DNA of 64,000 nucleotides from Chlorokybus atmophyticus (Eukaryota; Plantae; Mesostigma and Chlorokybus algae): positions 417,976 to 481,975 of the forward strand of contig RHPI01002990.1 in NCBI GenBank assembly GCA_009103225.1, given 5' to 3'. Below are positions 8,560 to 59,300 of the stretch, in pieces (the first letter of the stretch is position 1; the number at the start of each line of letters is the position of its first letter). The translations under genes and the position numbers were made by a program. The notes beneath the pieces were generated by a model, which saw nothing but the letters and a program-made list of their open reading frames with translations, searched no databases and was not told where the DNA came from.

Positions 8560-8564
8560 TGTGA

Positions 8565-8638
8565 CGACCACAACGGGAATCGAACCCGCGACCTCTGGAT
8601 CCGAAGTCCAACGCGCTAATCCACTGCGCTATGCGGTC
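8565..8638 (-). tRNA. trnR-UCG: tRNA-Arg(UCG), intronless, 74 nt
   Basis: GACCGCA-TA-GCGC-AGTGGATTA-GCGC-G-TTGGA-CTTCGGA-TCCAG-AGGTC-GCGGG-TTCGATT-CCCGT-TGTGGTC-G folds as a full cloverleaf with anticodon TCG. An upstream TATA-like motif (atatataa) and a CAA motif are present. Confidence 0.96.
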
Positions 8639-8639
8639 A

Positions 8640-9418
8640 TCTGTTTTGATAGCGTGTAAGTCTTGTTATATATTGCATGCTGTTAAATAGTAAACGGAAG
8701 CAATTGACCAATCTTTGTTCGTTCCTAAGTTCCGACCATCAACTTCCATCCGCCCCCTGTTTAAATAGAATGTAAGTCCAGCAATTGTATTTGATATCCG
8801 TCAAATAGCAAACGGAAGCAATTGACATCAACTTCCATCCGCCGCCGGAAGTAGGCGGAGGGGGTCTGCCAGTTGCGATGTGGCTGACATGGCCAGGGAT
8901 GGCGCCCAAAGTTGGCGCCGCGGAGTACGGGCGTCTTAGCGCAGACGCCGCGCGGTACGGGCGCTTGCGGTTGTGGCCCTGGCAGGAGCGCATGGAGCCA
9001 TGCGCCCTGCGCTGGATCCTCCGCTCTGTTCATGTTGCTGCGGCCGCCCAGGGGGGGCGGCGGCGGCGGTGGCGATCGGGATTAGGGTTGACAGCTCAAG
9101 CCAGCGGACGGCTGTGCGTCGGAATCTCTCGCCCACCTCTGCTTTTCGGACGCGCTGCTTGGACAAAGTTGCTGCCGACAGCAAAGGTAAGTGCCTGCCG
9201 CCTGTGGCACAGTCTGCTACACCATCGTATTGGTCAATAATGCGAAACGTTGCGCTAGGTACAGGTAGTAGTAGTCGTGCGTAAGTAGGCCCGTATGCAT
9301 GTTAGGCATAGAGGCAGTGCCAGCAAACAACACAGCAGCAGCAGCGGCATTCCTTTGCACCCATCATGCTGTGCTTTCATGGAACGTTCAGTCAGCAGCA
9401 GTACGCGTTTACGTCTCA
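8640..9418 (+). repeat. Repeat module R, copy 1 (5' ~780 bp only)
   Basis: High similarity to 21160-21996 and 29300-30100. It opens with ~105-bp subrepeats (aaatagcaaacggaagcaattgacc...ttcctaagttccgacc), followed by a GC-rich segment with a splice donor (gcaaag|gtaagt). Confidence 0.9.
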
Positions 9419-9654
9419 TCTGAATTTCGTGGCTTTAGTGCAACCGATGACGGAAATCGAAACTCACTGCTATATGTACGCAAATACAAGCACGGAACAC
9501 GGTCCCCTCGGCCGTCGATGGCGGCGATGACGCGGTAGAGTCAGAGCAGGGCGGCGAAGTCCGCACGATGACACCTGGCGCGCTCCGCCGCCCCTTTTGC
9601 TCAGTGGGCTGCGGCGTACGGCGAGAGGATGCAGCGCAGTACGGGCAGTTTAAC

Positions 9655-12600
9655 ATGGGCACCTCTCCTGCATGGATCCATGCAGGGGAGGCACCCTCCC
9701 TTGCCTCTCTGCCTGCCTTGGCGCCTTGGCGTTCAGCCGCCGCCTGCAGCGACTGTCCTGCTGTCCAGCTATCCTGTAATGTGGCCTTTGGGGTTTCAAT
9801 TGGTGGAGCTTGGGGCCGGCTGCTGTTGCCGACTCGGATAGGACGAACTTGGTCGTGCTGCAGCCTGCCTGGTGAGCGTTACACTCACCATCAAATTCAA
9901 CGTGTGACTTGGTGATTTGTGCTAACCCTAATCTCAGCTTACTCACTCACTCACTCACTCACCCTGCCTGCATTCGTTCTTACTCACTTCAAGTCGCTAC
10001 CCGGGTAGTTTGTTTTTGTTTTTTTGACTAATTATACTCGATCTGAGCATGTTTCCCTGTTTCACTCAGTTTGCTGCTCACGCACCCGCCTTCCTTCCCA
10101 TACTCGCCACCAGTCAACTACTACTCAATTTGCACATGCTTATTTATAATTTGCAGCCCACTTCCGCACACGGCTTGCTGATCACTCACATTCAAACACT
10201 TGCTCACTCACACTCAGTTGGGTATGTTAGCTACACTCTCACAGCCTCCCTCCCTGCCTCTCTCCCCAACAAACTCATTACACTTCATTCTCAATCCGTG
10301 CACATCCACTTACCCACTTGGTTTACTACTCATTCACACTTGTGCACACTTACTCACTCACTCCCGCACCGTTGAGTTTGGTCCCTCCGTCCCTTGCTCA
10401 GTACAATTTATTTTCAGTCCGGGCATCTTCACTCCCTCCCTCCCTCCCTCACTCAGTCATACTCACCCTCAACTGCACATCCACTTACCCGCTTGGTTTG
10501 CTGCTTACTCACACTTGCACACTCACTCACTCAGTCCCACACCTCCGTCCCTTACTCACTACAACTCATTTTCAGGGCATCTACACTCACCATCACGGCA
10601 ACGGTTGCACCTTCACTCATCCACTAACTGACTCACTCACTCGCTCAGTCACATGCATGCTCATACTCACCATCCCGCAGCAGCCAGGTGTGGACTGACT
10701 CAGCGGATAGAGTGCGTGAGTGAGTTTGCGAGCGAGCAATACACAGGGACTCCAAGCTAGCTACAACTCTCAGCCTGCAATCCCAACACACATTCGAGTC
10801 ACTCATTCACTGACGTACTCACTCTCGCTTGCGCACGCACTCACAGTCTGGTACACTTACACACCCTCCCTCTCTCCCTTATTTGCTGCGACTTCAAGCT
10901 CAAACCCGTGTTGTCTCACTTACCCACTCACCCACAGACATCCTCCCGCAGCAGCCAAGCTCGGAGGATGTCGTTCATATCCAAGGACCGCGGGTTGGGG
11001 AGGATTTCAAAGGCTTTCGTTCGTACTCGGGGAGTGGACATTCTGCACGACGCATATGCACGCCTACAGGACGGGTAGGGTGTTCACTTGCGTGCGTGCG
11101 CGCGTGTGTGTAATGTGCGCTGCATTTGTGATTGTGATTGTGCGTGTGTTGGTGGCAATCAATGAACTCTGTGCTGCAGGGCTGAGCGGCGCAGGATGTG
11201 GAAGCCGGGTGAACCCTGGGATGACCTCAACGCCGTGTGCCTTCACCTCCGCGCGCTGGTGGCCTCAGCAAGCAAACCCGCCCTCGGACGACTTGTGTGT
11301 TTTGAAGCTCGCCAAGTTGGCGCCTGGATCCTCGCTCACTCGGGCTAGCCTGCTGCGCCTGGCGCTCATCACGTGGATCCTCGAGCTGCCCCTTGGCGAC
11401 CCCCTGCGCCACGCGCAGACATGGCGAGACATAGCCTCGCACCCTTCCCTTCACGGCGAAGACCTGCACCAAACCGTGCGCATGTCCTATTATGCACGCT
11501 TTGTGCATGGCTTCGATCTCTTGGATCAGGCCGTGCTCATGCTAGAGACCTCCTTGACAGACGCTCAGGTATGTATATGCGTGCGTGCGCGTTGTGTTAA
11601 TATAATCTCGGTGTCTTCAACACACAAGTTGTGTGAGCGAGCTGAACTAGCAAAGTACACACCCCTGTGTGCAGCTGGTTGCACAGGCTAACAAGTGTGC
11701 CCATGTTTAATGCGTGTGCCGCAGTGTGCACTGACTGGCTTGTGTTTCTCCTGTTTCAGATCTCCCTCCTGTTGAGCATGCTTGGCCTCTGGCGCGACTC
11801 TCGCGAGGGGTGCTCTCCGGAGAGCAATCATCGCGCCAGGCAATACGAAGAGGTGTTTCGGCGGCTGTCTGCTGGCTATAGGGTTACTGAGGAACAAGGT
11901 GAAGACACTTACAGTCAGGAGGAGGGAGAGGACCTCGCCAACTGCGGCTCCGTCAAGCACTTCCTCACCTTGAGTGACGGGTGTCATCCTTGCGCTCTGC
12001 TGACCAGCGCAAGACCTCTACCCCGTCTGCAGCGAACCTTCAGCACGCTCCCGTTCACATTCCCCACGCACAGCCTGGTGATGGCGAGCCATCATCTGGT
12101 ATCCATGGTCAACGTGCGGGCGTCTGAACGGGGGTACGTCCCTCGAGGCGGCCGCGGCCTCGATCGCGACCGTTACCTTGATTCCCTCCATTGCACGGGT
12201 GCAGCCCCGGCCTTCAATTGGCGCACTGCCGTCAGCACCATCAAGGAGGCCACAACGTCTTGGAGTACAACCGGGGTCATGGACTTCATGCGCGCTGCAG
12301 CTAGGAAGATAGAGGTCGTGTACCATCGCACGATCTCGTCGGCGTGGTACATGGAACCCCCCCAGTGGAGCCGCTTCCCTCTGGACACAGACCTGTTGGC
12401 TCTCGTGCTCGCCACGCCGTACTACACAGCCACGAAAGACCTGCAGCCTCTCCAGGCTCCGGTGGCAGCCAGTGGTGGCTACAATCCCAAGTGTGCGCGC
12501 ACCTACCTGCGCTATCGCTCGTGTGCTGATGCATGTTGGGGGTGTCACGAAACTGATCAACCGATCGCTGTGCAGGAGTAGCTTGGGCAACCTTATACGA

Positions 12601-13253
12601 TGCTTGGAGGCCTTGGGGCTGCTCTCCGGCGCTGATCTTGCCCCTGAAGTCCTAGAGGAGCTCTGGATGACTCAAGGGGGTGCGCGACGCTTGTACCGAA
12701 CCATGATCAGCCAGGCTGAACCTTACATGGACGTGCACGTCGGGGAGGTGGCAGACATCCTCTGCGCTCCTGCGTACCAGGTGCGCACTTGGTTCTGAAT
12801 GCTGCTTGCAATGATATGCAAACGTGCTGCTTCATGCTCTCAACCGCACAGGACCTCGCACATGTGCCTGGCCGAGCCGACATCATGCAGCTCGCTGCCT
12901 GCGGCCGGTCGCTCCTGGAGTTGGCTCGACGCATGAAGCAGGTCAGCATGCTGACGTGGAGCATGCTGAAGTTTGAAAAGCTACCCGGTATTGGCCACAT
13001 CACCCTGGAGGTGCATTGGGCCGATAATAAGAATCAAGACAGCACGGTGCGTGCAAGAACTGTGCAGTGATTTGCTGAACCAATGCCATTGACATAACAA
13101 CTTACACTGTGTGTGTGTTTTCAGCAACTCTATACTCGCGGCGGCATCTACGACGAGGCCGCTGTCTTTGATCTTATCCGGCTCGCACATTACTTCAACT
13201 TGCTTTCGCATAGCGATCTGCCATTAGGAGGACTCGCTGCGCTGCCTCCACTT
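9655..13253 (+). repeat. Left arm of large inverted repeat (segment A)
   Basis: ORFs mirror those at 13797-17230 (coordinate sums 27050 inside, 27044 beyond a 6-bp indel near 11130). The arm starts at atgggcac. Confidence 0.95.
11180..13253 (+). pseudogene. 5' exons of a large unknown multi-exon gene (frameshifted/stop-disrupted), forward copy truncated at 13253
   Basis: Protein-like blocks are bounded by GT-AG sites: ...LETSLTDAQ|gtatgt, ttcag|ISLLLSMLGLWRD..., ...ILCAPAYQ|gtgcgc, ...NKNQDST|gtgcgt, ttttcag|QLYTRGGIYDE. No family was recognised. Confidence 0.55.
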
Positions 13254-15870
13254 CTGAGGCAAAGAGGTAATGAGACAGGTGAGTGAGATGGAAGCATTCA
13301 ACACAAACAAACACGAATGCAAGCCATACAGCTGCCTCGCCCGCGCGCACGCACGTACGAGGCAGCAGGGGCAGACCGAATGAGACAGATGGACGAGCTT
13401 GAATCATACAACACAAACAACTTGTTGAACACACGAAGCAAAGAGTTACTGATCGTGGACACAAGGCATGCACGTGTATGAGACGAGCACGTGCCGACAG
13501 AGTGCAGCAGCAAGCAACATGTTCAAGCGTGTGCTTACTTGTCAACGAAGCCAGCCTGGGCCGCAACGGTGGGCTCTTGAAAGTCGAAATGGAGGCTGCC
13601 GTCCAGCACCCACGGTACGAAGACTCCCGTGGTAGTGGCGCCTGCGCGGACGCCATGCGCGTCGATGTCGAACCCTGCTGTGCGAAGCATCACCAGGGCA
13701 GCCTGTTGAAGCTTCACTGTGGGCCATGCCTCCCCAGTCGGCAGTCCCTGTGGTGTCAGATCCTGGAAGAGAGGTTGCTGCCACGCCAGCGGGTGCAAGT
13801 GGAGGCAGCGCAGCGAGTCCTCCTAATGGCAGATCGCTATGCGAAAGCAAGTTGAAGTAATGTGCGAGCCGGATAAGATCAAAGACAGCGGCCTCGTCGT
13901 AGATGCCGCCGCGAGTATAGAGTTGCTGAAAACACACACACAGTGTAAGTTGTTATGTCAATGGCATTGGTTCAGCAAATCACTGCACAGTTCTTGCACG
14001 CACCGTGCTGTCTTGATTCTTATTATCGGCCCAATGCACCTCCAGGGTGATGTGGCCAATACCGGGTAGCTTTTCAAACTTCAGCATGCTCCACGTCAGC
14101 ATGCTGACCTGCTTCATGCGTCGAGCCAACTCCAGGAGCGACCGGCCGCAGGCAGCGAGCTGCATGATGTCGGCTCGGCCAGGCACATGTGCGAGGTCCT
14201 GTGCGGTTGAGAGCATGAAGCAGCACGTTTGCATATCATTGCAAGCAGCATTCAGAACCAAGTGCGCACCTGGTACGCAGGAGCGCAGAGGATGTCTGCC
14301 ACCTCCCCGACGTGCACGTCCATGTAAGGTTCAGCCTGGCTGATCATGGTTCGGTACAAGCGTCGCGCACCCCCTTGAGTCATCCAGAGCTCCTCTAGGA
14401 CTTCAGGGGCAAGATCAGCGCCGGAGAGCAGCCCCAAGGCCTCCAAGCATCGTATAAGGTTGCCCAAGCTACTCCTGCACAGCGATCGGTTGATCAGTTT
14501 CGTGACACCCCCAACATGCATCAGCACACGAGCGATAGCGCAGGTAGGTGCGCGCACACTTGGGATTGTAGCCACCACTGGCTGCCACCGGAGCCTGGAG
14601 AGGCTGCAGGTCTTTCGTGGCTGTGTAGTACGGCGTGGCGAGCACGAGAGCCAACAGGTCTGTGTCCAGAGGGAAGCGGCTCCACTGGGGGGGTTCCATG
14701 TACCACGCCGACGAGATCGTGCGATGGTACACGACCTCTATCTTCCTAGCTGCAGCGCGCATGAAGTCCATGACCCCGGTTGTACTCCAAGACGTTGTGG
14801 CCTCCTTGATGGTGCTGACGGCAGTGCGCCAATTGAAGGCCGGGGCTGCACCCGTGCAATGGAGGGAATCAAGGTAACGGTCGCGATCGAGGCCGCGGCC
14901 GCCTCGAGGGACGTACCCCCGTTCAGACGCCCGCACGTTGACCATGGATACCAGATGATGGCTCGCCATCACCAGGCTGTGCGTGGGGAATGTGAACGGG
15001 AGCGTGCTGAAGGTTCGCTGCAGACGGGGTAGAGGTCTTGCGCTGGTCAGCAGAGCGCAAGGATGACACCCGTCACTCAAGGTGAGGAAGTGCTTGACGG
15101 AGCCGCAGTTGGCGAGGTCCTCTCCCTCCTCCTGACTGTAAGTGTCTTCACCTTGTTCCTCAGTAACCCTATAGCCAGCAGACAGCCGCCGAAACACCTC
15201 TTCGTATTGCCTGGCGCGATGATTGCTCTCCGGAGAGCACCCCTCGCGAGAGTCGCGCCAGAGGCCAAGCATGCTCAACAGGAGGGAGATCTGAAACAGG
15301 AGAAACACAAGCCAGTCAGTGCACACTGCGGCACACGCATTAAACATGGGCACACTTGTTAGCCTGTGCAACCAGCTGCACACAGGGGTGTGTACTTTGC
15401 TAGTTCAGCTCGCTCACACAACTTGTGTGTTGAAGACACCGAGATTATATTAACACAACGCGCACGCACGCATATACATACCTGAGCGTCTGTCAAGGAG
15501 GTCTCTAGCATGAGCACGGCCTGATCCAAGAGATCGAAGCCATGCACAAAGCGTGCATAATAGGACATGCGCACGGTTTGGTGCAGGTCTTCGCCGTGAA
15601 GGGAAGGGTGCGAGGCTATGTCTCGCCATGTCTGCGCGTGGCGCAGGGGGTCGCCAAGGGGCAGCTCGAGGATCCACGTGATGAGCGCCAGGCGCAGCAG
15701 GCTAGCCCGAGTGAGCGAGGATCCAGGCGCCAACTTGGCGAGCTTCAAAACACACAAGTCGTCCGAGGGCGGGTTTGCTTGCTGAGGCCACCAGCGCGCG
15801 GAGGTGAAGGCACACGGCGTTGAGGTCATCCCAGGGTTCACCCGGCTTCCACATCCTGCGCCGCTCAGCC
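13254..15870 (-). pseudogene. Inverted copy of the same 5' exons, extended by segment B (13796-13481) and intron X (to 13254)
   Basis: The reading continues past the arm end (LPPLA... / ...AAQAGFVDK|gtaagc) into an intron whose 3' part matches 17233-17480. Confidence 0.55.
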
Positions 15871-17230
15871 CTGCAGCACAGAGTTCATTGATTGCCACCA
15901 ACACACGCACAATCACAAATGCAGCGCACATTACACACACGCGCGCACGCACGCAAGTGAACACCCTACCCGTCCTGTAGGCGTGCATATGCGTCGTGCA
16001 GAATGTCCACTCCCCGAGTACGAACGAAAGCCTTTGAAATCCTCCCCAACCCGCGGTCCTTGGATATGAACGACATCCTCCGAGCTTGGCTGCTGCGGGA
16101 GGATGTCTGTGGGTGAGTGGGTAAGTGAGACAACACGGGTTTGAGCTTGAAGTCGCAGCAAATAAGGGAGAGAGGGAGGGTGTGTAAGTGTACCAGACTG
16201 TGAGTGCGTGCGCAAGCGAGAGTGAGTACGTCAGTGAATGAGTGACTCGAATGTGTGTTGGGATTGCAGGCTGAGAGTTGTAGCTAGCTTGGAGTCCCTG
16301 TGTATTGCTCGCTCGCAAACTCACGCACTCTATCCGCTGAGTCAGTCCACACCTGGCTGCTGCGGGATGGTGAGTATGAGCATGCATGTGACTGAGTGAG
16401 TGAGTGAGTGAGTGAGTCAGTTAGTGGATGAGTGAAGGTGCAACCGTTGCCGTGATGGTGAGAGTGGATGCCCTGAAAATGAGTTGTAGTGAGTAAGGGA
16501 CGGAGGTGTGGGACTGAGTGAGTGAGTGTGCAAGTGTGAGTAAGCAGCAAACCAAGTGGGTAAGTGGATGTGCACGGATTGTTAATGAAGTGTAATGAGT
16601 TTGTTGGGGAGAGAGGCAGGGAGGGAGGCTGTGAGAGTGTAGCTAACATACCGAACTGAGTGTGAGTGAGCAAGTGTGTGAATGTGAGTGATCAGCAAGC
16701 CGTGTGCGGAAGTGGGCTGCAAGCTATAAATAAGCATGTGCAAATTGAGTATGACTGGTGGCGAGTATGAGAAGGAAGGCGGGTGCGTGAGCAGCAAACT
16801 GAGTGAAACAGGGGAACCTGCTCAGATCGAGTATAATTAGTCAAAAAAACAACAACAGTCAAAAACACAACAAAAACAAACTACCCAGGTAGCGACTTGA
16901 AGTGAGTAAGAACGAATGCAGGCAGGGTGAGTGAGTGAGTGAGTGAGTAAGCTGAGATTAGGGTTAGCACAAATCACCAAGTCACACGTTGATTTTGATG
17001 GTGAGTGTAACTCACCGGGCAGGCTGCAGCACGACCAAATTTGTTCTATCCGAGTCGGCAACAGCAGCCGGCCCCAAGCTCCACCAATTGAAACCCCGAA
17101 GGCCAAGTAATAGGACAGCTCGACAGCTGGACAGTCGCTGCAGGCGGCGGGAGGAAGGCGCCAAGATCGCCAAGGCAGAGAGGCAAGGGGAGGGCGCCTC
17201 CCCTGCATGGATCCATGCAGGGGTGCCCAT
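13797..17230 (-). repeat. Right arm of large inverted repeat (segment A inverted)
   Basis: Reverse complement of the left arm. The inner ~2.5 kb gives identical translations; the outer ~1 kb has substitutions and indels. It ends at gtgcccat. Confidence 0.95.
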
Positions 17231-17489
17231 CCTCTCATACACGTGCATGCCTTGTGTCCACGTGCAGTAACTCTTTGCTTCGTGTGTTCAACAAGTTGTT
17301 TGTGTTGTATGATTCAAGCTCTCTTCCATCTGTCTCATTCAGTCTGCCCCGGCTGCCTCGTACGTGCGTGCGCGCGTGCGAGGCAGCTGTATGGCTTGCA
17401 TTCGTGTTGGTGAGTTTGTTTGTTTGTTTGTTTGTGTTGAATGCTTCCATCTCACTCACCTGTCTCATTACCTCTTTGCTATGTGCACA

Positions 17490-20400
17490 GCTCAAAGATA
17501 ATGCTGCAGTACGTGAGGTCCCTTGCTACAAGGGCGGCCCAGATTGCCAAGAGACATGGGCTGCTAGCATCCGACAGCGTTCCCGACACCCGCGAAGACA
17601 GCAATACCAAAGTTCAGCGGTCAGCAACATTGATGCAACTGCTGCATATGCAGCGCGCAGACGAGGCGGTCCGCCGTCGCGCGGGACGTCATCTCCGAAT
17701 CAGTCACCCGCCGACAAGGGTGGGACTTCGACACGGCCCCTAAGGGGATCGCAGGTAGGTGCACGTGCATGCACGTCTCTGTTCTGCTTGAAACTGATGT
17801 GATACTCATAGACGGCGTCTTGGCCGCAGCTCTGCGTGCGGCCCAAGACGAGTACAAACAGAAGTGCAGGAAAGAACCCCGACAGCAAGCCTGCACGACG
17901 AGGTCGTGCCCGTGGCGCGCATTCGCGAGGTCCGTACTGTCCAAGTCCAGGAGCTGGAGCAGCAACGGCGCACCCTCCTCAACGATTATGCGGCGCGCGC
18001 AAGGACAAACACGGGCATGTCGGGGAGCCGGCATGCGACAATGCCGCCTGAGGTGAAACGCGAGGTCGACCGCATCTCTGCACAGCTCAGAGCACTCCTC
18101 GACAAGGGCGGGCTCCAAGCCATGCATGCCGAGCTGGATGGCATGCAAGTCAACCCCTCGTCAACCCGTCTGGAGGGAGAGCGTGACACAATGCACCCCG
18201 ACTTGAACAGAGTCCTCGACGCTCTGCGCAGGCGTGGCAGCGCGGCGGGCCACACCACGTTGACCGCGTTCATTGCTGCAGGTCCGGAGTCATGGTACAA
18301 AGACCCCGACCTTTGCACGCCGTGCGCACTCCTTCCAGAGTGCCTCCGACGAGCTCCTCAGCCAGCACTCCAGCATCCTCTACTGCCCGCTCTACTCGCG
18401 CCGAAGGCAGATCCATCACCGCTCGAGTGGCGTGGCACCCGCTAGTACGAGACGAGGCGTCTCAGCAACCAGAGGGTGTCTCAGCGGAAGCGGCGTATGA
18501 GGAGGCCCAAGCAGCATCAGTTGCGCAGCGCGCAGCAGCCTTGCAGGAGTTGAAGGACTTCGTTGACGATGCCGTGCAAGCGCGGTGGGGCGCCGAATGT
18601 TGGGACAAGGCTTACGCTGCCTACAACTATGGCTGGACCGGGCCAAAGTGTCTTGACCTACCGGTCCTGACAAACATTACTCAGGTGTGTTCGTATGTTT
18701 ATGTTGATTATTCAAGTGTGTTCTCGTGTGTTCGTGTGCATGTTTCAAGCTCCCTCATCTGTCTAATTCAGTCTGCCCCTGCTGCCTCGTGCGTGCGTGC
18801 GTGCGTGCGTGCCTGCGTGTGCACGAGGCAGCTGCGTGGTCTGCGTTCGTGTTGGTTTGTGTGTTTGCTTGTGTTGAATGCTTCAAAATCTCACATCTAC
18901 GTGCACAGGCTGCTCTAGACAATGTGGGTGTCTCCACAACTGCCGAACTCGACGACTTCACCACCCGACACATCACCGCCAGCAGGCGGAACACGAAGGC
19001 CAAGTGGGAGGGGCGGGTCCAATCCGGCCACCCAGCCCACAGCAGTATGCAGGAGTTCTTTGGCAGCTGCACCAACAAGCTTCCCTTGTTGGTGCAGATC
19101 TTCCTGCACCGGCTTCGCTTCGGGCTCTTGCCCGACACCGATCTGCAACAACTTGAGGACATGTGGGGGCTCAACCCTCGCATCATCATCGGCGCGGCGT
19201 GGGACGATTACGCCGAGCGCGCATCGCAGCTGTAAGTACTAGTAGTAGATGTTGATTGCTGCAAAATCAGTCAGCTCGCACACCCACAAGTGCAAGCGCA
19301 AGCGCACGCACGCGCACACGCATGCAGAGATGTACTTTGCACAGTGCCACATGTGTGCTGCACTGAAACAGGAAGGAGCGCTTGGAGCAGGCCGCTGCTC
19401 CATTGAGTCGGCTGAAGAAGGGTGTACAGGATGCCAAGAACCGCAGCGCACGCGCTCTCGCCATCCAGAAGACTGCTGGCGCATCCCCCAGCTCTTCATC
19501 ACCCGCCCTTCAGCATCGCGCAGTGCATGGCGTCAGCACACTGCAGCAGCTTGACAACCAGCTGCACGATACTGGACGCAGCGGGCTCATGCAGCTCGCG
19601 GTGGTGGCTGCATTGTCATTGTCGCGGAGAAGGACCGCGCCAACTGTTGTCAGCGTCAAGGACATGATCCGCAGGCCGACCTTCGAGGCAATCAAGGCAC
19701 TGGAGCTTGGCAACGTCGGTGAGCTAGAGGTCGCGGAGGCAGCAGTGGCGCTGTGGGCGCGCAATGCTATTCACATTGTCGGCGTCACAACCTTGGAAGA
19801 GGCAGGAGCTTGGGCCGCTGCACGAGGTGCCAAGTCCAAGGCGTTTTCCGCTGCGGAGGGGTTGGTTGAAGCATACAAGACAGGCAAGCTCGCAGAGTTC
19901 TACAGGGCCCATTCTCCTCGTGAGGCTGCAGCCGACAGCGATCAGCAACAGACCCCTTGCGAGCCGGACGACAGCGACGAGGAGGTCCTCCACGTGAGCG
20001 CACGGCATGAAGACACCGTCCTTCAAGAGCTGGTGCGTGATCAGTACGACTATTTGATAACAAGCACTAATACATTGCTTGCAAGAGTAACAAGTGTTTG
20101 TTAACAAACAGTTGTTACTCATTAACACGTTGCAGTGTGTTAGTGAGTAACAATTGTAACGTGATTGTGATAGTTATGTCAATCTGTGATGTTAATGATA
20201 GGAGGACAGTGACGACGATGAAGGGGTTGGCGCTGTGGACCAGCACGTCCTTCAAGTTGCAGCAGAGGAGATTGAGGCACAGCTGGCAGGTTAGTTGGCT
20301 CTCTCATTTGCTGCTGCATGAAGCAATAGCTCTCTTGTAAGCATCTCTTGTTGTGGTGGTAATTGTCATTGTACGTGTGTTGTTGTATCCTGTTGTTCAT

Positions 20401-21159: not shown

Positions 21160-23628
21160 TCCACTGTTTTACTAGAACGTAAGTCCAACAAGTTGATATT
21201 CGTATGCCGTCAAATAGCAAACGGAAGCAATTGACCAATCTTTGTGCGTTCCTAAGTTCCGACCACTGTTTTGATAGGACGTAAGTCCAACAAGTTGATA
21301 TTTGTATGCCCACTATTTTAATAGAACGTAAGTCCAGCAATTCTATATTGATATGCCGTCAAATAGCAAACGGAAGCAATTGACCAATATTTGTGCGTTC
21401 CTAAGTTCCGACCATCAACTTCCATCCGCCGCCGGAAGTAGGCGGAGGGGGTCTGCCAGTTGCGATGTGGCTGACATGGCCGGGGATGGCGTCCAAAGTT
21501 GGCGCCGCGGAGTACGGGCGTCCTAGCGCAGACGCCGCGCTGAACGGGCGCTTGCGGTTGTGGCCCAGGCAGGAGCCATGCGCCCTGCGCTGGATCCTCC
21601 GCGCTGTTCATGTTGCTGCGGCCGCCCGGGGGGGGCGGCGGCGGCGGTGGCGATCGGGATTAGGGTTGACAGCTCAAGCCAGCGGACGGCTGTGCGTCGG
21701 AATCTCTCGCCCACCTCTGCTTTTCGCACGCGCTGCTTGGACAAAGTTGCTGCCGACAGCAAAGGTAAGTGCCTGCCGCCTGTGGCACAGTCTGCTACAC
21801 CATCGTATTGGTCAATAATGCGAAACGTTGCGCTAGGTACAGGTAGTAGTAGTCGTGCGTAAGTAGGCCCGTATGCATATTAGGCATAGAGGCAGTGCCA
21901 GCAAACAACACAGCAGCAGCAGCGGCATTCCTTTGCACCCATCATGCTGTGCTTTCATGGAACGTTCAGTCAGCAGCAGTACGAGTTTACGTCTCAATTT
22001 GTTTGTCCAGACTAGCAATGCTTACACAACATCCACTAAAAGAGTGGTGTATGCTCGTCCAATTGCTTGTGTCATGAACTCATGCTGCTGACCATGACAA
22101 GCAATTGGGTTAGCTATCGCATGGGTTAGCTAGCATGCCACCATGTCTGTTGTGCTGTCTGGTGTGTGTGATGTGCGCTTTCCCACCACGTCAAGCTAGA
22201 CGTGAGGCGAGGTGATCACAGGGGCATGTTGCTGGGCTGTTACTTTGCACTTGCAACTTACACACTGCCCACTCCGTGCCACATCCATTCAAGCTCACAA
22301 CAGTGTCAACGTGTGTGTACCTGCTCAGTTGCAACAACCAAGTCTTACGGCTGTGATTTGCTCAGGGGACAAGCTCACTTCTGCTGCGTTGTGGCCTGTC
22401 ATCCTTGGAGGCTTTGCAGCTCGCATCCACGACAACTCCACCAGCAGGCTCCACCAGCAGGCCAAAGGTATAACTGTAGCCATTGCTGATGCGCTGCTAC
22501 CGTTACTCTGGTTGCTGCTCTGGCACTCATGTTGTTTGGCGCCTTCCTTTCTCTAATCTGTTGTCACTGTCTTCAGGCCAGGGGTGCGTGGCGACGGGGC
22601 TGGCGGGGGCACTGGCGCCGATCCATGGCGCTACGACTAGGGCTACCAACAACCGGTTGACAGCTTGAAGGTGTGTCGCTGTCTCTGCCAACTCTGCCGG
22701 CATGCCTGCTACTAACACAGCGCATTGTGATGTCCAGATCACGCGCCTCTCACTCGTTCATAGCACTATTCCATGCCACCTTGACTCTCATTCGCATTCT
22801 GACTTTCTCCCGCACTTCTCGCCCTCAGCAGCCTCAATTCCAACCCCACTCTTGGTCTTGACTTCTATACCGCTGCAACCAGGTCCGTCCTCGTGGCTTG
22901 GTTCAAGCATACGCACGCACTCGCGCATGTGTCTTTTGCTGCCTCTGAATGCATGTTTGCAATTCGTCTCGTGCTTTCGCTGTCTGCCTGCGTGAATGAG
23001 TCTGATTTCCCTCCACAGCATGGCTGCTCCCGCGGCGCGCTTCGGCACCTTCGACCGAGCAGCGCACGGCCCTCGTGCGGACTGGTTGGGAAATCTGCAG
23101 GCCATCTCCAGATCGAAGAACGTTGCAAAGGCTCGGGCGGACGGACCATACATCACCCACGAGGCGAATCGCCGCAAGCTGCAAGGGTGAGTAACTCCGG
23201 TACCCTAGACCCGTTGCCACCAATGCGCTCTGTGCCATGCGTGTGATGGGAAGCTCATTCAGCCTTGGCAGGTCTGCTGCCGTCTCGGTTGTGAACGACT
23301 CCACTCTCAAGTGGTTGGCATTCATGCGTGTGCAAACACATCTCGGGAGGCTGGCCAACGAGCGAAGCAGCTCGGGAGTCGATGCCTCAGGCGGTCAAGG
23401 GTTGCGCGTCATCAAGCTCACGGAGGTGTCGCCTCGATCCGACGCACACGCCAGACGCCTGGCGCTGCTGCAGACCATGTTGGCACACCCGCAGCCATGC
23501 TTCTGTGACCCTCGTGTTTGGCATGAGCTGCTTGCTCACGACCACCTGCACGGCCGAGATGAGTTCAACTTCGTGGCCAAGCTCGTCTTCGGCTTTCGCA
23601 CACTGGACGAGGCCGCCGTGGCCATCGA
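21160..23628 (+). repeat. Repeat module R, copy 2 (with decayed hydrophobic ORF and 5' part of gene D)
   Basis: Colinear with 29300-31766. It carries more 5' subrepeats than copy 1 and is truncated shortly before an (AT)n-flanked gap. Confidence 0.9.
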
Positions 23629-29299: not shown

Positions 29300-31766
29300 A
29301 ACGAACGGAAGCAGGTGATCAATGGTTGTGTGCTCGTAAGTTCCGACGATCAACTGCCACCCGCCGCCGGAATGCGCGGCATACAAGCGTTTGGCGCAGA
29401 CGCCGCGTGGTACGGGCGCTTGAAATTGCGATCGCCTTTGACCTTTGCATTGATGTCAAGATGTCCGACCCAGCAATCTGACTTTGTACTTGTACACTGC
29501 GAATGGAATGGAAGGGATCAACCTTTTTTTTTGTTTTCCACAACTTCCAGCCGCGGCCGGAAGTAGGCAATGGAGGGTCTGCCAGTTGCGATGTGGCTGA
29601 CATGGCCAGGGATGGCGCCCCAAAGTTGGCGCCGCGGAGTACGGGCATCTCAGCGCCGCGCGGTACGGGCGGTTGCGGTTGCGGTCCAGGCAGGAACGCA
29701 TGGAGCCATGCGCCCTCCGCTGGATGCTCCGCTCACTTGGTTATGTTGCTGCGGCCGAGGGGGGCGGCGGCGGCGGCGGCGGTGGCGATCGGAATGAGGG
29801 TTGACAGCTCACGCCAGCGACGGCTGTGCGTCAAAAATTACTCGCCCAGCTCTGCCTTACGGACGCGCTGCTTGGACAAAGTTGCTGCCGACAGCAAAGG
29901 TAAGTGCCTGCCGCCTGTGGCACAGTCTGCTACATCATCGCATTTGTCAAAAATGCGAGAAGTTGTGCTAGGTCAAGGTAGTAGTAGTCGTGCGTAAGTA
30001 GGCCCGTATGCATGTTAGCCATAGCCAGCAAACACACCAGCAGCAGCATTTCTTTGCACGCATCATGCTGTACTTCCATGGAACGTTCAGTCAGCAGCAG
30101 CAGCATTGTGGCTCAATTTGTTCATCCAGACTGGGATTGCTTCTACAACACGTGAAGTGACGCGTGCTCCCAATTGCTTGCTCATGAACTGCAGCTCATA
30201 TTCATCACAAGCAATTGGGCACTGGATGCGTCTCAGCATGTATGTACGTGTGTGACGCTGTTCGCCAGTCTGTGCGCTGTTGTGCTGCGCGCTGTCCATC
30301 ACGTTAAGTTGGAAGTGAGGCTACTCCCAAGCGCATGCTCGCCAGGCTGGTATTTTGCACTTGCAACTTACACACTGCCCACTTAGTGCCGCATCCATCC
30401 AAGCTCACAACAGTGTCAACGTGTGTGTACCTGCTCAGTTGCAGGCTGTAACCACAGCTGTGATTTGTTCAGGGGACACGCTCACTTCTCCTACGTCCTG
30501 CCAATTGCTGGCAATTTGGCTTATCGCCCTGGGAGGCTTTGCAGCTGCTCCCAACCTGACACGAAAACTTCACCAGCAGGCCAAAGGTATAACTGTAGCC
30601 ATCGCTGCTGCTCTGCTGTCGTTACTCTGGTTGCTGCTCTGGCACTCATGTTGTTTGGTGCCTTCCTTTCGTCAATCCGTTGTCACTGTCTTCAGGCCAG
30701 GGGCGCAAGGGCAAACAAGGTGCGTGGTGACCGGGCTGGCGGGGGCACTGGCGCTGATCCATGGTGCTACGACTAGGGCTGCCAACAACCTGTTGACAGC
30801 TTGAAAGTGTGTCGCTGTCTCTGTCAACTCTTACTAACTCTGCCTGCATGCCTGCTATTTCCACAGCGCATTGTGATGTCAACATCACGTGTCTCTTCCT
30901 CGTTCACAGCACTCTTCCGTACCACCTTGACTCTCGTTCGCATTCTGACCTCCTCCCGCACCCTTTGCGCCCTCAGCAGCCTTAATTCCAATCCCACTCT
31001 TGGTCTTGACTTCTCCATCGCTGCAGCACCAGGTCCGTCCCTTGGCATCTGCGCGAGCATGTCTTTCGCTGCCTCTGAATGCATGTTTGCAATGCGTGTC
31101 AAGCTTTCACTGTCTACCTGCGTTTTCGTGTCTGATCTCCCTCCACAGCATGGCTGCACCAGCGGCGCGCTTCGGCACCTTTGACTGAGCAGCGCACGGC
31201 CCTTGTGCGGACTGGTTGGAGAATCTGCAGGCCATCTCCAGGTCTCGCAACGTTCAAAGGCCCGGACGGACGGACCGTACATTGCGCACGAGGCGAATCG
31301 CCGCAAGCTGCAAGGGTGAGTAACTCTGGTACCCTACACCCTTTGCCACCAATGCGCTCTGTGCTGCTCTCGTGCCGCGTGCAATGGGAATCTCATCCAG
31401 CCTTGGCAGGGCTGCTGCCGTCTCGCTCGTGAATGACTCCACTCTCAAGTGGTTGGCATTCATGCGTGTTCAAACACAACTCGGGAGGCTGGCCAATGAG
31501 CGTGGCAGCTCGGGAGTCGATGCCTCAGGCGGTCAAGGGTTGCGCGTCATCAAGCTCACGGAGGTGTCGCCTCGATCCGACGCACACGCCAGACGCCTGG
31601 CGCTGCTGCAAACAATGTTGGCACACCCGCAGCCATGCTTCCGCGACCCAGGTGTCTGGGATGAGCTGCTTGCTCACTACCACCTGCACGGCCGAGACGA
31701 GTACAACTTTGTAGCCAAGCTTGTCTACGGCTTCCGTACACTAGACGAGGCCGCCGTGGCCATCGA
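29300..31766 (+). repeat. Repeat module R, copy 3 (more diverged 5' end; continues into longer gene D)
   Basis: Colinear homology with copies 1 and 2. Confidence 0.88.
30355..30804 (+). CDS. Possible small hydrophobic (membrane-like) protein in module R
   Basis: 149-aa ORF with hydrophobic stretches (LLAIWLIALGGFAAA; ITVAIAAALLSLLWLLLW). The homologous frame persists in copy 2 at 22212-22668 across three in-frame indels. Confidence 0.3.
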   Translation: MHLQLTHCPLSAASIQAHNSVNVCVPAQLQAVTTAVICSGDTLTSPTSCQLLAIWLIALGGFAAAPNLTRKLHQQAKGITVAIAAALLSLLWLLLWHSCCLVPSFRQSVVTVFRPGAQGQTRCVVTGLAGALALIHGATTRAANNLLTA

Positions 31767-43876: not shown

Positions 43877-45230
43877 TTACGCATAGCGAATGTTCTTGTG
43901 CTTGCCGCCAATGTGCTTAGCATCAGCAATGAGTGGCGCCGTCCAGCCGGTATTTGTGTACTCCAGCACGGAAAGTGCGGTGTAATCCAAGGATGGGACG
44001 GATGCATTGGGAACCAACCCGAGCACGAAGGCCTCGCAGGAAGCGCCGTGACCAATGCAGACCAACTTGTCACCTTCATGAAGCTCAGCCAGGTGAGTCA
44101 CCGTAGCGCGCCCCCTGGCCAGCATGTCTTGCATCGTCTCGTACTTCACACTCTTCTCCGACACAGGCACGTTGTACCAAGACTCATAGCCAACTTCAAC
44201 ACGCTTGGACACCTGCATAGCGCCACAGCAGTTGCACAAGTTTTTTTAAAAAACTGCTCACGTCTTCTACGCGCAGAATCAACTCGATGCATCACACGAT
44301 CGCAGTCACAACAGCATGTACATGTGCAACCGCAACTAACCACATGCAAGCTGTGTTTAACTTTGAGATGCTCACCTTCTCGTGCAGTTGTTTGTTAGTC
44401 ATCCACATGTTACGCTGGTTCTCAGTCGGCAAGTCCCGGTACCAGGGTGCGTTTAACCACTCGCACAGACCTTGCTCAACCCGCAAAGAGCTCACACCCA
44501 GAACCTGTGACATGACACTACAACCCGTTTGCTTGAGGTCACATAACAACAGTGGAAGAGAGGTTGCGCCTACATGATCAACAGCAAAAGGTAACAGGCA
44601 GAGAAATCAAGCCATGCAAGCTTCTCATCAGTCATCAATCAGGGGGTACTTCAGGCAAGCTACTCCACTCGAGTCTACAACACGTGACGGAGACAATGCG
44701 CACACACACATGCATGCACGCATGCACGCGCAGAGACACAATGCAACAGTTGTATTTGGGACAACATGCTTTTGTCCGACAACATGCTTTTGTTGTTCAT
44801 GCATTACTGGACCGACATGCATGACAATAACATCATAAAGACCGGACATCATGCATGCATGAAGCAATGATGAACCTTGCCTCAGCGACGCCGTCGGCAG
44901 TCTGCACACACCGCTGGAACGGCGAGACATAGATGATGGCGTCCGCCCCGAGGCCATACTCCTCCTTCAGCCTTCTGCCCAACGCGCTAGCCTACAATGT
45001 AACATACAGCTTTACACACAGATCAGTAATCACATGCTCAGCACTAGCAATGATAGCATGCAGCTGAGCAAAGCACAGACAACCTACGGTGATCTACACC
45101 ATGATGCACCTACCTGCTCGCGCCCAGCCTCGGTGAGGTGGGGATCCTGAGGGCGTGGATCTCTCTTCACCCACCCCGGGTCAACGAAGTCTATGCGCTC
45201 ACCATGTCGAGCTACATACACCCGCCTCAT
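43877..45230 (-). CDS. Histidine phosphatase / phosphoglycerate mutase-like protein, ~230 aa, 4 exons
   Basis: Exons 45230-45114, 44991-44881, 44504-44376, 44212-43877. Motifs: VARHGER, DPHLTEAGREQ, SPFQRCVQTA, EQGLCEW, IGHG. Intron 2 has a GC donor. Confidence 0.92.
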
Positions 45231-50310: not shown

Positions 50311-50501
50311 GTTGTTTGTTAGTCATCCACATGTTACGCTGGTTCTCAGTCGGCAAGTCCCGGTACCAGGGTGCGTTTAACCACTCGCACAGACCTTGCT
50401 CAACCCGCAAAGAGCTCACACCCAGAACCTGTGACATGACACTACAACCCGTTTGCTTGAGGTCACATAACAACAGTGGAAGAGAGGTTGCGCCTACATG
50501 A
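50311..50501 (-). repeat. Apparently identical ~190-bp copy of 44387-44577 (most of PGM exon 3 plus upstream intron)
   Basis: Same sequence at offset 5924; it ends at a single N (50502). Confidence 0.9.
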
Positions 50502-56456: not shown

Positions 56457-59300
56457 TGTTCAGCGAGAATGAGGAGGACTACGGACGCGGCAGCCCTCAC
56501 ACCAATATGCCTCCAGAGGCACAGTGTCTTTTGGCGGGTCGAGGCAGTAGCAGTGCTTACCGTTGTTGCAGCCGTCGCACAACATCATGAGTGCGTCGTT
56601 GTCGGCACTGCCGCACTTCTCGCGACGCTTGCTGCGACTGGGGCGAGGGTGTTAAATGACATCGAAGCCTGCAATGTGTGGCAAATAACATGGAGCACAG
56701 TTCTCCATGCTGTCCTTGAGGCGCTCGCCGTTGTTGCCGAGCAAATCTAGCACTTCAGAGGGGAGTACCTTCAGGACCTTGCAGACGACACGCTTGACAC
56801 TGATGTAAAAAGTGTCGTTGGTTTGGATCATGCGGTAGACATAGTTGCCCGCTTTGAAGCGACGACTGCGCTGTTTGTTCAACCCACTGCGGACGCGTTT
56901 ATAGCGCAGTGTGTCCCGGTGCTGAGCAATGCGGGGATTGCCCATGGCCATGGGGATGACGTGTGCGAATAGGTAAGCGCGCTGTTGCATGTCGTGCAAC
57001 ATAGCCACAGGGTTGTTGAGGTTGTCCAGCACGCGTTCCACCTCCTTTTGTGCGCGGAAGGGGAGTAAGGGTTCCCTGCCAAACAACAGCTGATACGAGC
57101 TGTACATGCGCAAGGAAGCTTGCTTGGACAGTCGATAGCCCAAGGCTATCCAGGGGAGGTAGTCATCCCAGGTGCGCATCTCGTAGTCGATAACGTACTT
57201 GCACAAGGCCTTCTTGATAGTCTGGACCGTATGTTCCGCCAGCCCATCCGCTTGCGGATGGTCACGTAAGGTGCGCCGGTGGTCAATGTAGGAACAATCG
57301 AGCAAGGTGTCGAACTCGCCGCGGAAGTCCGCTCCCTAGTCGGTGATGACTTCAGCGCATGAGCCGAAACGACTAAGCACATGGCCTAGGAAAGCCTAAG
57401 CGGTTCCTTTGTAGCTTTTGTCGGAAAGGGGGACCAGCTCAACCCACTTTGAAAAGTGTTCGAATATGACGAGGATGTACTTGTTGCCAAGAGCTGAGGG
57501 TGCTGAATCTCCAAGGATGTCCAGTTCCCACGGGTAGAACATGCCGGCGATAGGGAGTGGGTGCAGCGTGCTGGTGTGGGTGTCGAGGCTGGCGCGCACC
57601 AGGTCGCAGTGCGTGCAGTTCGCAACAAAGGCACGAACCTGGGTGTGCATGCTATGCCACCAGAACTGGGCACTTACCAAGCTGACGGTGCGCTTGATAC
57701 CGAAGTGCCCCAACTCTATGTGGAGTGCAGCGACAATGCCCTCGCGTCGGTGCGGAGCCGGTACCTCCTTGTCATGGATGTGGACCCGCCGGAACACGAG
57801 TCCATCCTCCTAACGGTAGTTCTGACAACGCTGCCTGACGCGGTCACGCTCGCACGTGCTTAATCCTACCACCTGTTGTCCATGTTGTAAGTAGACTATG
57901 GAGTTCTTGTCCAACCTGATGTTTTGACCTATGTCTACAACCGGGAGTTGGGCATCATCTAGCGTGGTCTATTCAGCTGGGTCGGTGTCGACGGGGGTGA
58001 GCGCTGGCATGTCCTCTGTTTCAGCATCGTCGGAGCCAATCCTGTGATGGTGTCCCGTCCCGAGCGCAATGCAGCTACGGCAAACATGGTGGCCACCTGC
58101 GGTGGTGGTGCCTTTGGACCCAACTCATGTCGGGCACCAGTGGCGTCGTTGGTGGAAAGGTGGGGGTTGCGACTGAGGCCGTCTGCGTCCTGGTTGACCA
58201 AGTCTGCCCAGTGGGTGATCTCGAAGTTGTACCTTTGTAGCAGCAGAGCCCACCTGGCCAACTTGCCTGTAAGGTGCTGGTTGGTCATGAGCCATTGCAG
58301 TGGATGGTGGTCGGTGATCAGTAAGAATTGTCTTCTGAACAGAAAAGGTCTGAAGAAGGAGATGGCCCATACTGCAGCAAGGCATTCGCCTTCGTAACTG
58401 CTATAGTTGGCCTCAGCGCTGTAGTTGCTGCGGCTGGCGTAGGACATCACCCGCTCCCTCTTGTTGTCGTCAAGCTGAACAAATACAGCGCCCATGCCGA
58501 GCTTGCTCCAGTCGGTATGAAGAACAAAGGGTTTGGTGTAATTTGGTCGCTGCAGGATGGGGGCTGAGGTGAGCCTCTGCTTCAGCTCTTCGAAAGCCGG
58601 TTGCTGGGCCTCCTTCCAGCTCCACTTTGTCTCCTTCTTGAGAAGTTTATTGAGGGGGCGCGCCACCTTGGCAAAGTCTTTGACGAACCTCCTGTAGTAG
58701 TTGGCGAGGCCGAGGAAGGCACGCAGTCGGGTCAGGTCTGTTGGGGCTGGGATAGATGCCAACGCCTCCACCTTGACTTGCTGAACGTACACGCCGTTGG
58801 GCACGATCATGTGACCAAGGTAGAGAACTTTGCGGGTAAAAAAAGTGCACTTGTCGGGGTGCACAGTCATCCCTGGTGCCGCAGCTGGTGCTTTGTCGAT
58901 GTCCCGCTGGGGGGGTAAAGTAGTCCCGTTCGCGACAACGGACCACCTGTTCTTGCTGTTTACGGAACTGAGGAGCCCGATCCAGTGCATAAAAGCGGCG
59001 GCATTGCTCACGCCATGAACATGTGTCCAACTCAGGGTCGTTGCCCAGCAAATGCCCGTAACAGTTGAACCACCTGCGGTCCAAGTCGTCCAAGTGGTCC
59101 AGGTTGGACGGCTCTTGGTTGGGTGGTTCCAGCAATGCTGGATGCTCCAGCGCCGACCGGCGGTTGTACACATCCCAGAACATAGTGAGGGTTTCGTTGT
59201 TAATGCGAAGGGTGCGCAAGTCGTGACCAGCTCCCGTCGATGGAGAGGGACAGTGTCGACACCATATAGCAGGGCATCTTCGTTGATCTGTTCAGTCCAA
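56457..59300 (-). mobile_element. Ty3/Gypsy pol remnant: partial RT thumb, RNase H, integrase (HHCC, rve) and C-terminal PHD finger; in-frame stops and deleted RT core
   Basis: HPDKCTFF...LYLGH, RAFLGLANYYRRFV, LHTDWS, YASRS, YEGECLAAVWA, TDH, LARWALLLQ, ADGLSR; HIELGHFG...CTHC; WELD...VITD...HPQADGLAE; LMMLCDGCNNGKHCYCLDPP...WCEGC. No YxDD was found. Confidence 0.93.

Follow-up and report, generated by a model that had tools for sequence, protein, structure and literature searches.

Primate sex-chromosome palindromes consist of near-identical arms around a unique spacer and are kept so by arm-to-arm gene conversion; the identity of their arms lies far above what the age of the duplication predicts, and flipping of the spacer by recombination is expected. 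Inverted duplicates of genes are also known as natural silencers, among them maize Mu killer, the soybean CHS I locus and the Drosophila hpRNA genes, whose targets are separate genes and whose definition includes both small RNAs and a phenotype. Young plant miRNA genes similarly arise by inverted duplication of their targets. With respect to the rearrangements themselves, inversions flanked by inverted duplications are documented in Drosophila under a staggered-break model, with duplicates that measure ~1.9 kb at most and 321 bp at the median (Ranz et al., 2007; PMC1885836). Human fold-back inverted duplications (PMC3907307) and DUP-INV-DUP double template switches are reported to combine inverted arms with a short unique spacer, and their junctions exhibit little or no microhomology and one small insertion.

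Here, we analyze a window of 64,000 nucleotides from the alga Chlorokybus atmophyticus that contains a palindrome of several kilobases, a clear example of a kind of rearrangement that is already known. Like the Drosophila staggered-break inversions, it comprises a unique segment that, as assembled, lies inverted between two inverted duplicates, each of a stretch that had separated paired breaks, its junctions are without homology, and its duplicates later diverged by substitutions and small indels. Unlike the Drosophila inversions, which span hundreds of kilobases to megabases, the inverted unique piece measures only 310 bp; moreover, the event lies wholly inside one gene, one of the two duplicate pairs has been homogenised, and one duplicate, at 3.6 kb, is larger than any in the Drosophila set. 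The arms, spacer and junctions likewise resemble those of the human rearrangements, yet the human cases are reportedly large, terminal and paired with deletions, whereas the Chlorokybus event is interstitial, of kilobase scale and old (3-8% diverged). The palindromes of primate sex chromosomes share with it near-identical arms, a unique spacer and an identity above that predicted by age, but the Chlorokybus palindrome is ~1000 times smaller, bears a single truncated gene copy per arm, and is homogenised only over the inner 70% of the arm, with graded decay toward the tips. Finally, as in silencers of the Mu killer and CHS I type, an inverted partial gene duplicate could make long hairpin RNA in a host that has Dicer and Argonaute; unlike those silencers, the locus has no separate target. 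We consider it probable that the palindrome is a real, single-locus inverted segmental duplication within a multi-exon gene of ancestral order A-B-X-C, produced by one event and subject to later arm-to-arm conversion.

The locus lies on C. atmophyticus scaffold 2, and its features are collected in Table 1. Repeat finding, self-BLAST and global alignment all identify the arm at 9653-13253 as the reverse complement of the arm at 13797-17230; global alignment sets the arm ends at 9653/17232 and 13253/13797, where repeat search and self-BLAST gave 9655-13253 and 13797-17230. The arms share a perfect core of 2122 nt and are 98.5% identical over 2.8 kb and 87% identical over the outer 0.8 kb; an inverted match of 2.1 kb without a difference is far beyond chance expectation. 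Repeat search and self-BLAST also recover a second inverted pair, X, at 13259-13486 and 17230-17479. The two pairs, A1/A2' and X1'/X2, both directly abut the unique piece B, and the 543 bp between the arms are made up of a 5-nt filler, the inverted copy of X and B. The original prediction, made by inspection of the sequence, had proposed precisely this plus-strand order (A, inverted X, inverted B, inverted A, X, C), with inverted duplicates of 3.6 kb and ~230 bp flanking a unique piece, and both the order and the duplicates are confirmed. The unique piece also exists, but the 316 bp attributed to it must be corrected to 310 bp (13487-13796), with the 5-nt filler lying separately on the other side of X'.

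Table 1. Features of the Chlorokybus atmophyticus palindrome and its gene (positions within the window).
Feature	Position	Strand	Description
Arm A1	9653-13253	+	~1.57 kb of upstream sequence and the gene's first exons; model Chrsp2S04638, P0001
Outer diverged part of A1	9653-10719		From alignment against A2'
20-nt perfect palindrome CCTGCATGGATCCATGCAGG	9667-9686		14 nt inside the A1 tip; twin at 17202-17221
Homogenised core of A1	10720-13253		Against 13797-16323: 0 substitutions, one 6-bp indel
Exons 1-4, common to all three models	11221-11568, 11760-12491, 12577-12780, 12852-13046	+	GT-AG introns of 71-191 nt
Junction J1	13254-13258		5-nt filler CTGAG between A1 end and inverted X
X1'	13259-13486	-	Inverted copy of intron piece X
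B'	13487-13796	-	Unique piece, 310 bp, read on the minus strand
Arm A2'	13797-17230	-	Inverted A copy, contiguous with B; model Chrsp2S04640, P0003, 588 aa
X2	17231-17479	+	Intron piece X in original orientation
C	17480-20101	+	Last 11 nt of intron, acceptor TGCACAG/ at 17490, then downstream exons

The two arm copies carry separate gene models (jgi/Chlat1 names; Table 1), and a third, identical model, ChrspC227765S00734, is found on the unscaffolded singleton contig C227765, which probably represents the collapsed core of the repeat. The two neighbouring models and the model on the loose contig are all one gene, rearranged. In A1 the annotated model ends in X', while the 588-aa model passes from A2' directly into B and stops at a TAA formed by a consensus GTAAGC donor. 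The coding part of B (13796-13538) is the remainder of an exon that starts at 13822 inside A2', and 13537-13487 are the first 51 nt of an intron, following the donor GACAA/GTAAGC. When a model of codon usage was trained on nothing but the A exons, B scored +17 in the annotated frame, against -22 and -31 in the remaining frames. The acceptor at 17490 opens C in the frame that the donor requires, the sole frame there that is both open and coding-like, and the downstream exons of C share their codon bias with A and B. These observations support the proposed ancestral order A-B-X-C, with intron X joining B to C, and the structure is supported as one gene that is now arranged as A / X'B'A' / X-C, the ancestral order being deduced from splice logic at this locus. 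The related claim that B continues the frame of A needs amendment: B is coding and is read from A2', but its true frame is not the QLYTRGG continuation, being entered instead via the acceptor at 13823/13822, 26 nt before the A/B boundary. We also considered whether the C acceptor could rescue the A1 copy in frame by splicing to cryptic donors just past J1 (13266/13267 and 13278/13279) and rejected this, as both donors are of phase 1 where C needs phase 2, with an immediate TAA.

Long homology is absent from both novel junctions. J1 carries its filler and, in the coding frame, places a TGA directly past the junction (13255-13257), whereas J2 (17230/17231), which is either blunt or shares 1 nt of microhomology, joins two sequences, the outer arm and X2, that are distinguishable from their copies. 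The duplicates themselves record considerable age. Outside the core, A1 and A2' differ by 32 substitutions in 873 aligned nt (3.7%) and by 11 indels, one of which is a 175-bp tandem duplication present in A1 only, and X1 and X2 differ by ~3% and two indels. The two pairs are about equally diverged, as expected of one event, though this equality of age is approximate, with 8% in the outermost 250 bp of the arms, 0% in the inner 2.5 kb and 3% in X. From the tip inward, substitutions along the arms fall through 8.0, 2.0, 3.0 and 1.3% to 0, 0 and 0%, and the absence of any substitution in 2528 nt of inner arm has a chance of ~5e-11 under a uniform rate. The use of k=85 in the assembly could mask a few differences in the core but not a divergence of 3%. 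Arm identity is well above the level expected from the age of the duplication, and the pattern fits a history of one old event that was followed by gene conversion from arm to arm.

Such an event would have duplicated and inverted the 5' 3.6 kb of the gene (A: the upstream region, exons 1-4 and the start of exon 5), would have copied, also in inverted orientation, 0.23 kb of the following intron (X), and would have joined two new junctions without homology. Two routes may be envisioned, namely two staggered breaks followed by end-joining or two template switches during replication or repair, and either would yield the assembled order, A / X'B'A' / X-C, or, with the spacer flipped, A-B-X / A' / X-C. 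Gene conversion would then have held the inner 2.5 kb of the arms identical, and divergence of 3-8% would have built up in the tips and in the X pair. The gene as assembled consists of three pieces: A1, cut at J1; A2'-B, facing A1 and stopping at the unused donor; and C, which lacks a promoter of its own. Each arm copy, having its own upstream region, would presumably be transcribed toward the other, and double-stranded RNA may be a by-product, whether from a hairpin or from overlapping convergent transcripts, with no target beyond the locus.

Sequence comparison reveals no apparent relatives of the gene in other organisms. When 1.84 billion representative proteins were searched with phmmer, only its own model and one weak match (E = 9e-5) to an unrelated repeat protein, probably spurious, were found, and its 90% cluster, drawn from 15 billion proteins, holds three models, all of which carry the sequence of this locus. 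Word-index searches of proteins measuring 0.55-1.75 times the query length gave no match for the large A exon, for the B exon or for the last exon of C; this range could miss an annotated C model if longer than 1.75 times the query. Pfam recognised no domain in any exon-like ORF or in the complete 588-aa model, the sole match being a sub-threshold DUF309 (E = 0.01-0.02). The ESM Atlas offered no credible neighbour (best score 0.77, with low recognition), and an AlphaFold2 prediction from the single sequence reached a pLDDT of 34. Rfam matched nothing within the locus and only a tRNA upstream of it, and a scan of the spacer for bacterial promoters and terminators, which has no bearing on a eukaryote, gave no hits.

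How far the assembled order can be trusted depends on the data behind it. The sequence studied appears to be the published C. atmophyticus assembly, which was built from Illumina reads only (SOAPdenovo at k=85, GapCloser and Pilon), with 2-20-kb libraries included. Neither the exact 100% identity of the core nor the orientation of the 543-bp spacer is secure, because perfect repeats longer than k collapse in such assemblies; the core was treated as a repeat here, as evidenced by the third identical model on a singleton contig. The unique piece was predicted to be inverted, and so it is in the assembled sequence, but its orientation, set between identical inverted repeats of 2.5 kb, shares in this insecurity. 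It is conceivable, if on balance unlikely, that the palindrome is real but that its spacer is reversed in the cell, or that both orientations coexist, with a true order of A-B-X-(filler)-A'-X-C. This would imply an intact gene whose B-to-C intron has expanded to ~4.1 kb by taking in the gene's own 5' part as an inverted copy. As both spacer ends attach to one and the same end of the collapsed 2.1-2.5-kb perfect repeat, the assembly graph permits either orientation, and only inserts of at least 2.5 kb decide between them. Recombination between identical arms would interconvert the two forms: the conversion suggested by the divergence gradient implies arm-to-arm recombination, and crossovers flip the spacer. 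Furthermore, although neutral sequence has diverged by 3-8% since the event, the exons of C remain long, open and coding-like, as expected if C were still used. Against this, the assembly, with its 2-20-kb libraries, and the annotation, in which P0001 ends in X', display the inverted-B form, and a possible frameshift in the first exon of C, near 17620-17665, would suit decay. A more speculative extension, to which we attach very little probability, is a recombinational toggle in which the very exchange that homogenises the inner arms also flips the 543-bp spacer, so that the gene would switch from broken (A / X'B'A' / X-C) to intact (A-B-[intron with A']-C) and back. If true, this would constitute a reversible on/off switch of a gene in a haploid alga, the broken form providing convergent truncated copies capable of producing dsRNA.

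The original prediction further suggested that read-through transcripts could form a hairpin RNA of >2 kb that silences the gene's family, and this is not supported, given that the phmmer search and the 90% cluster reveal no family outside the locus. A more restricted proposal is that the locus is a natural hairpin-RNA (endo-siRNA) gene, in which RNA transcribed from A1 across the spacer and A2' would form a stem as long as ~3.6 kb, perfect in the inner 2.5 kb, and Dicer-cut small RNAs would regulate the gene's own transcripts. The long inverted repeat and short loop are present, the predicted fold is trivially perfect (MFE of -961 kcal/mol for 12900-14150), the spacer contains no AATAAA- or TGTAA-type motif on either strand, and the Chlorokybus gene set includes an algal-type DCL, a pair of AGOs and RDR-like genes (PMC7994812). 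Yet there is nothing beyond the locus on which silencing could act; introns of the antisense arm would stay unspliced, and a by-product of rearrangement accounts for all of the observations. Silencing by hairpin RNA is possible, but no evidence indicates that the palindrome silences anything; we regard a dedicated hairpin gene as improbable.

That the palindrome is absent from the genome and was created by a scaffolding or gap-closing error at a collapsed repeat is, in our estimation, very unlikely. The assembly does derive from short reads alone, a redundant singleton contig bears the same gene, and a perfect 191-nt repeat elsewhere in the window terminates at a gap. However, J1 and J2 both lie within continuous sequence with no N nearby, and the outer arms (32 substitutions, 11 indels) and the X copies differ, so the two copies were assembled as separate sequences; given the pieces present, the palindrome is the sole path that uses each unique piece once. 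A plain fold-back, in which the same sequence is walked twice, is ruled out because arm identity varies along the length and the two X copies differ by ~3%, and a long-read fold-back chimera is rejected for a published assembly that used no long reads. That the arms are the terminal inverted repeats of a transposable element of the foldback or long-TIR type is scarcely credible and was rejected: despite long inverted arms, a short middle and low-complexity, subrepeat-rich arm tips that each hold a 20-nt palindrome near the end, there is no target-site duplication at 9652/17231 (flanks GTTTAAC and CCTCTCA differ) and there are no further copies among 15 billion proteins beyond three models of this locus, while the gene borne by the arms is spliced in the ordinary way and extends into B and C, and X is duplicated outside one arm, which insertion does not produce.

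[quoted passage not shown] Divergence fades toward the palindrome's centre and so leaves, at kilobase scale, a textbook-like trace of what would be arm-to-arm gene conversion. The locus also serves as a warning to users of the genome that a perfect core and the orientation of the spacer within it are not to be trusted from a short-read assembly. Should small RNAs or both spacer orientations be found, the palindrome would become a natural test case for the birth of hairpin RNAs or for recombinational switching in algae.

Repeat search and self-BLAST of the window place two inverted arms, A1 and A2', each carrying about 3.6 kb of the 5' part of one gene, at 9655-13253 and 13797-17230 with a perfect inner match of 2122 nt, together with a smaller inverted pair at 13259-13486 and 17230-17479 that represents an intron piece, X; in a global alignment the arms run from tips at 9653/17232 to inner ends at 13253/13797. 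Because the 543-bp spacer between the arms consists of a short filler, an inverted X and a unique piece, B (see table), the plus-strand order is A, X', B', A', X, C, where C is the downstream part of the gene, and this matches exactly the order put forward in the original prediction. The junction at the end of A1 (J1, 13253/13254) carries the filler and the second junction (J2, 17230/17231) is blunt or has a 1-nt overlap, which argues for joining without homology, whether by end-joining or by template switches. Each arm has, 14 nt in from its tip, a perfect 20-nt palindrome, CCTGCATGGATCCATGCAGG (9667-9686 and 17202-17221); speculatively, it might have formed a hairpin at the breakpoint and promoted a break or switch there.

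Features of the palindromic locus, arm-to-arm divergence and mapped gene models
Feature	Position	Strand	Value
Spacer filler CTGAG	13254-13258		5 nt
Spacer, inverted X	13259-13486
Spacer, unique piece B	13487-13796		310 bp
Arm-to-arm substitutions (A1 coordinates)	9653-9899		8.0%
Arm-to-arm substitutions (A1 coordinates)	9900-10149		2.0%
Arm-to-arm substitutions (A1 coordinates)	10150-10399		3.0%
Arm-to-arm substitutions (A1 coordinates)	10400-10719		1.3%
Arm-to-arm substitutions (A1 coordinates)	10720-13253		0% (2528 aligned nt)
Chrsp2S04638, exons	11221-11568, 11760-12491, 12577-12780, 12852-13046, 13125-13283	plus	546 aa
Chrsp2S04640, exons	first four as Chrsp2S04638, then 13822-13538	minus	588 aa
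ChrspC227765S00734			484 aa

Just upstream of the palindrome lies one copy (8670-9418) of a dispersed repeat, adjoined by a tRNA-Arg(TCG) gene (8563-8639, minus strand); further copies, 87-88% alike, occur at 21196-21996 and 29541-30100, and two of the copies have 2.2 kb in common at 82% (21416-23628 and 29541-31766). An ORF at 57959-59173 (minus strand) encodes a reverse-transcriptase RNase H domain (Pfam E = 1e-33), which marks it as a retroelement, and a 533-bp tandem duplicate (99.8% identity) lies beside it at 59523-60586.

The published assembly was built from Illumina/BGI short reads only, using SOAPdenovo (k=85), 2-20-kb library scaffolding, GapCloser and Pilon (PMC7027972), and the fold-back chimera originally raised as a refutation is inapplicable to such data. 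The variable-length N runs and the singleton name “C227765” are consistent with a SOAPdenovo/GapCloser pipeline; the window holds four N runs, the nearest 23.7 kb away. A perfect 191-nt direct repeat (44387-44577 and 50311-50501), the second copy of which runs right up to a single N (50502), looks like gap-closing redundancy. A path walked twice would yield arms identical right to their tips. Between the arms, the outer 1 kb shows 32 substitutions and 11 indels, among the latter a 175-bp tandem duplication in low-complexity, CTCA-rich sequence (10317-10491) that A1 has and A2' lacks; the two X copies differ by about 3% and two indels. Outer A and X are therefore each present as two distinct copies. 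J2 joins two distinguishable sequences without interruption and, judged from the pieces in the window, no path other than the palindrome visits every unique piece once and the inner core twice. The exact 100% identity of the core is unreliable, as a few differences may have been merged, but a divergence of 3% would have survived assembly at k=85. All residues of ChrspC227765S00734, a model on a loose contig, map to 11196-13067 within the perfect core, and it is most simply taken as a second printing of the collapsed core. The two ends of the spacer meet the collapsed core at one and the same end of it, which makes both orientations valid paths; the assembled orientation is not trustworthy, and large-insert pairs alone could decide between the two.

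The introns of A are GT-AG and 71-191 nt long. The last exon of Chrsp2S04640 carries that model across the A/B boundary into B, and under a codon-usage model whose training set was the four A exons alone this frame of B scores +17.4, the remaining two -31 and -22, so that B is coding and part of the same gene as A. Of the splice logic first proposed for an ancestral A-B-X-C gene, the joining of B to A and the link from B to C through intron X held, but not the claim that B continues A's frame: the frame extending the last exon of Chrsp2S04638 into B is open but non-coding, and the true B exon is entered through an acceptor, CCATTAG/, at 13823, 26 nt ahead of the A/B boundary. The C-terminal end of Chrsp2S04638, LRQRGNETGE, falls within inverted X. 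B terminates at the donor GACAA/GTAAGC, and the annotated stop of Chrsp2S04640 is a TAA formed by the donor itself, which looks like an unspliced exon end. The B-to-C intron would comprise 51 nt of B, X and a final 11 nt that close with the acceptor TATGTGCACAG at 17490; this acceptor is similar to the gene's others. The donor is phase 2, and C is open for 83 codons in the required frame with a positive coding score, the other two frames (one with stops, one open) both scoring negative; signal of the same bias runs on in blocks to about 20100. Within the first exon of C the coding frame shifts at 17620-17665, which could reflect a 46-nt intron, a 19-nt micro-exon with a 150-nt intron, or a frameshift; the last, if it holds, might indicate decay or an indel in the assembly. 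The next intron in C (18684-18908) is about 80% similar to X (17230-17490; 13259-13486) over some 190 nt and has in common with it an internal hairpin, CTGCCTCG(TGCG)nCGAGGCAG, between unrelated flanking exons; these three are the only copies in the window, and the two introns may be paralogues, perhaps of an introner-like kind. The structural interpretation first offered was largely right, with the spacer's orientation insecure.

A phmmer search of 1.84 billion representative proteins with the largest A exon returned one real match, Chrsp2S04638, and a weak second one, an unrelated repeat protein (E = 9e-5). The 90% cluster of Chrsp2S04638 has three members (the models in the table), all source-named Chlorokybus atmophyticus. 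Protein searches with single exons (the large A exon, the B exon and the last C exon) were all blank, neither a Pfam domain nor an ESM Atlas look-alike was found for the gene, and its single-sequence structure model was unusable (pLDDT 34). The gene is an orphan without a gene family, and the phmmer result leaves the supposed family of silencing targets unsubstantiated.

In the assembled sequence the gene falls into three parts: the A1 coding frame meets a TGA directly after J1 (13255-13257, by hand reading), the A2'-B copy stops at its unused donor, and C is without a promoter. Cryptic donors just 3' of J1 that might rescue a splice to C are in the wrong phase. Were the spacer truly reversed, or able to flip, the gene would be intact, with a 4.1-kb intron holding its own inverted 5' part; the long coding-like exons retained in C mildly favour continued use, and we consider this reading unlikely, if worth entertaining. 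A role in silencing for read-through RNA is a possibility rather than a supported finding, and a decidedly improbable one: the convergent arm copies, each with about 1.57 kb of upstream sequence, would on read-through yield a perfect hairpin or overlapping antisense RNAs, and Chlorokybus carries an algal-type Dicer-like gene, two Argonautes and RDR-like genes (PMC7994812), but the sole target would be the locus itself.

Divergence between the arms falls from the tips to an invariant core (see table), for which the probability of no change under a uniform rate is about 5e-11. In larger palindromes, arms are kept identical by arm-to-arm gene conversion, and the same process, having held the inner arms identical, would best explain the core. 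The outer arm (3.7% overall) and the X pair (about 3%) show similar divergence, as would be expected from one event. The arrangement fits the staggered-break model of inversions flanked by inverted duplications (PMC1885836), although at 3.6 kb the larger duplicate runs to roughly double the longest in that paper, and very little sequence is inverted. An origin by fold-back or double template switch is no less plausible, the sequence fitting both alike. Rearrangements of this kind are known; here the affected gene is an orphan, and interest is modest, lying solely in the gene-conversion gradient.
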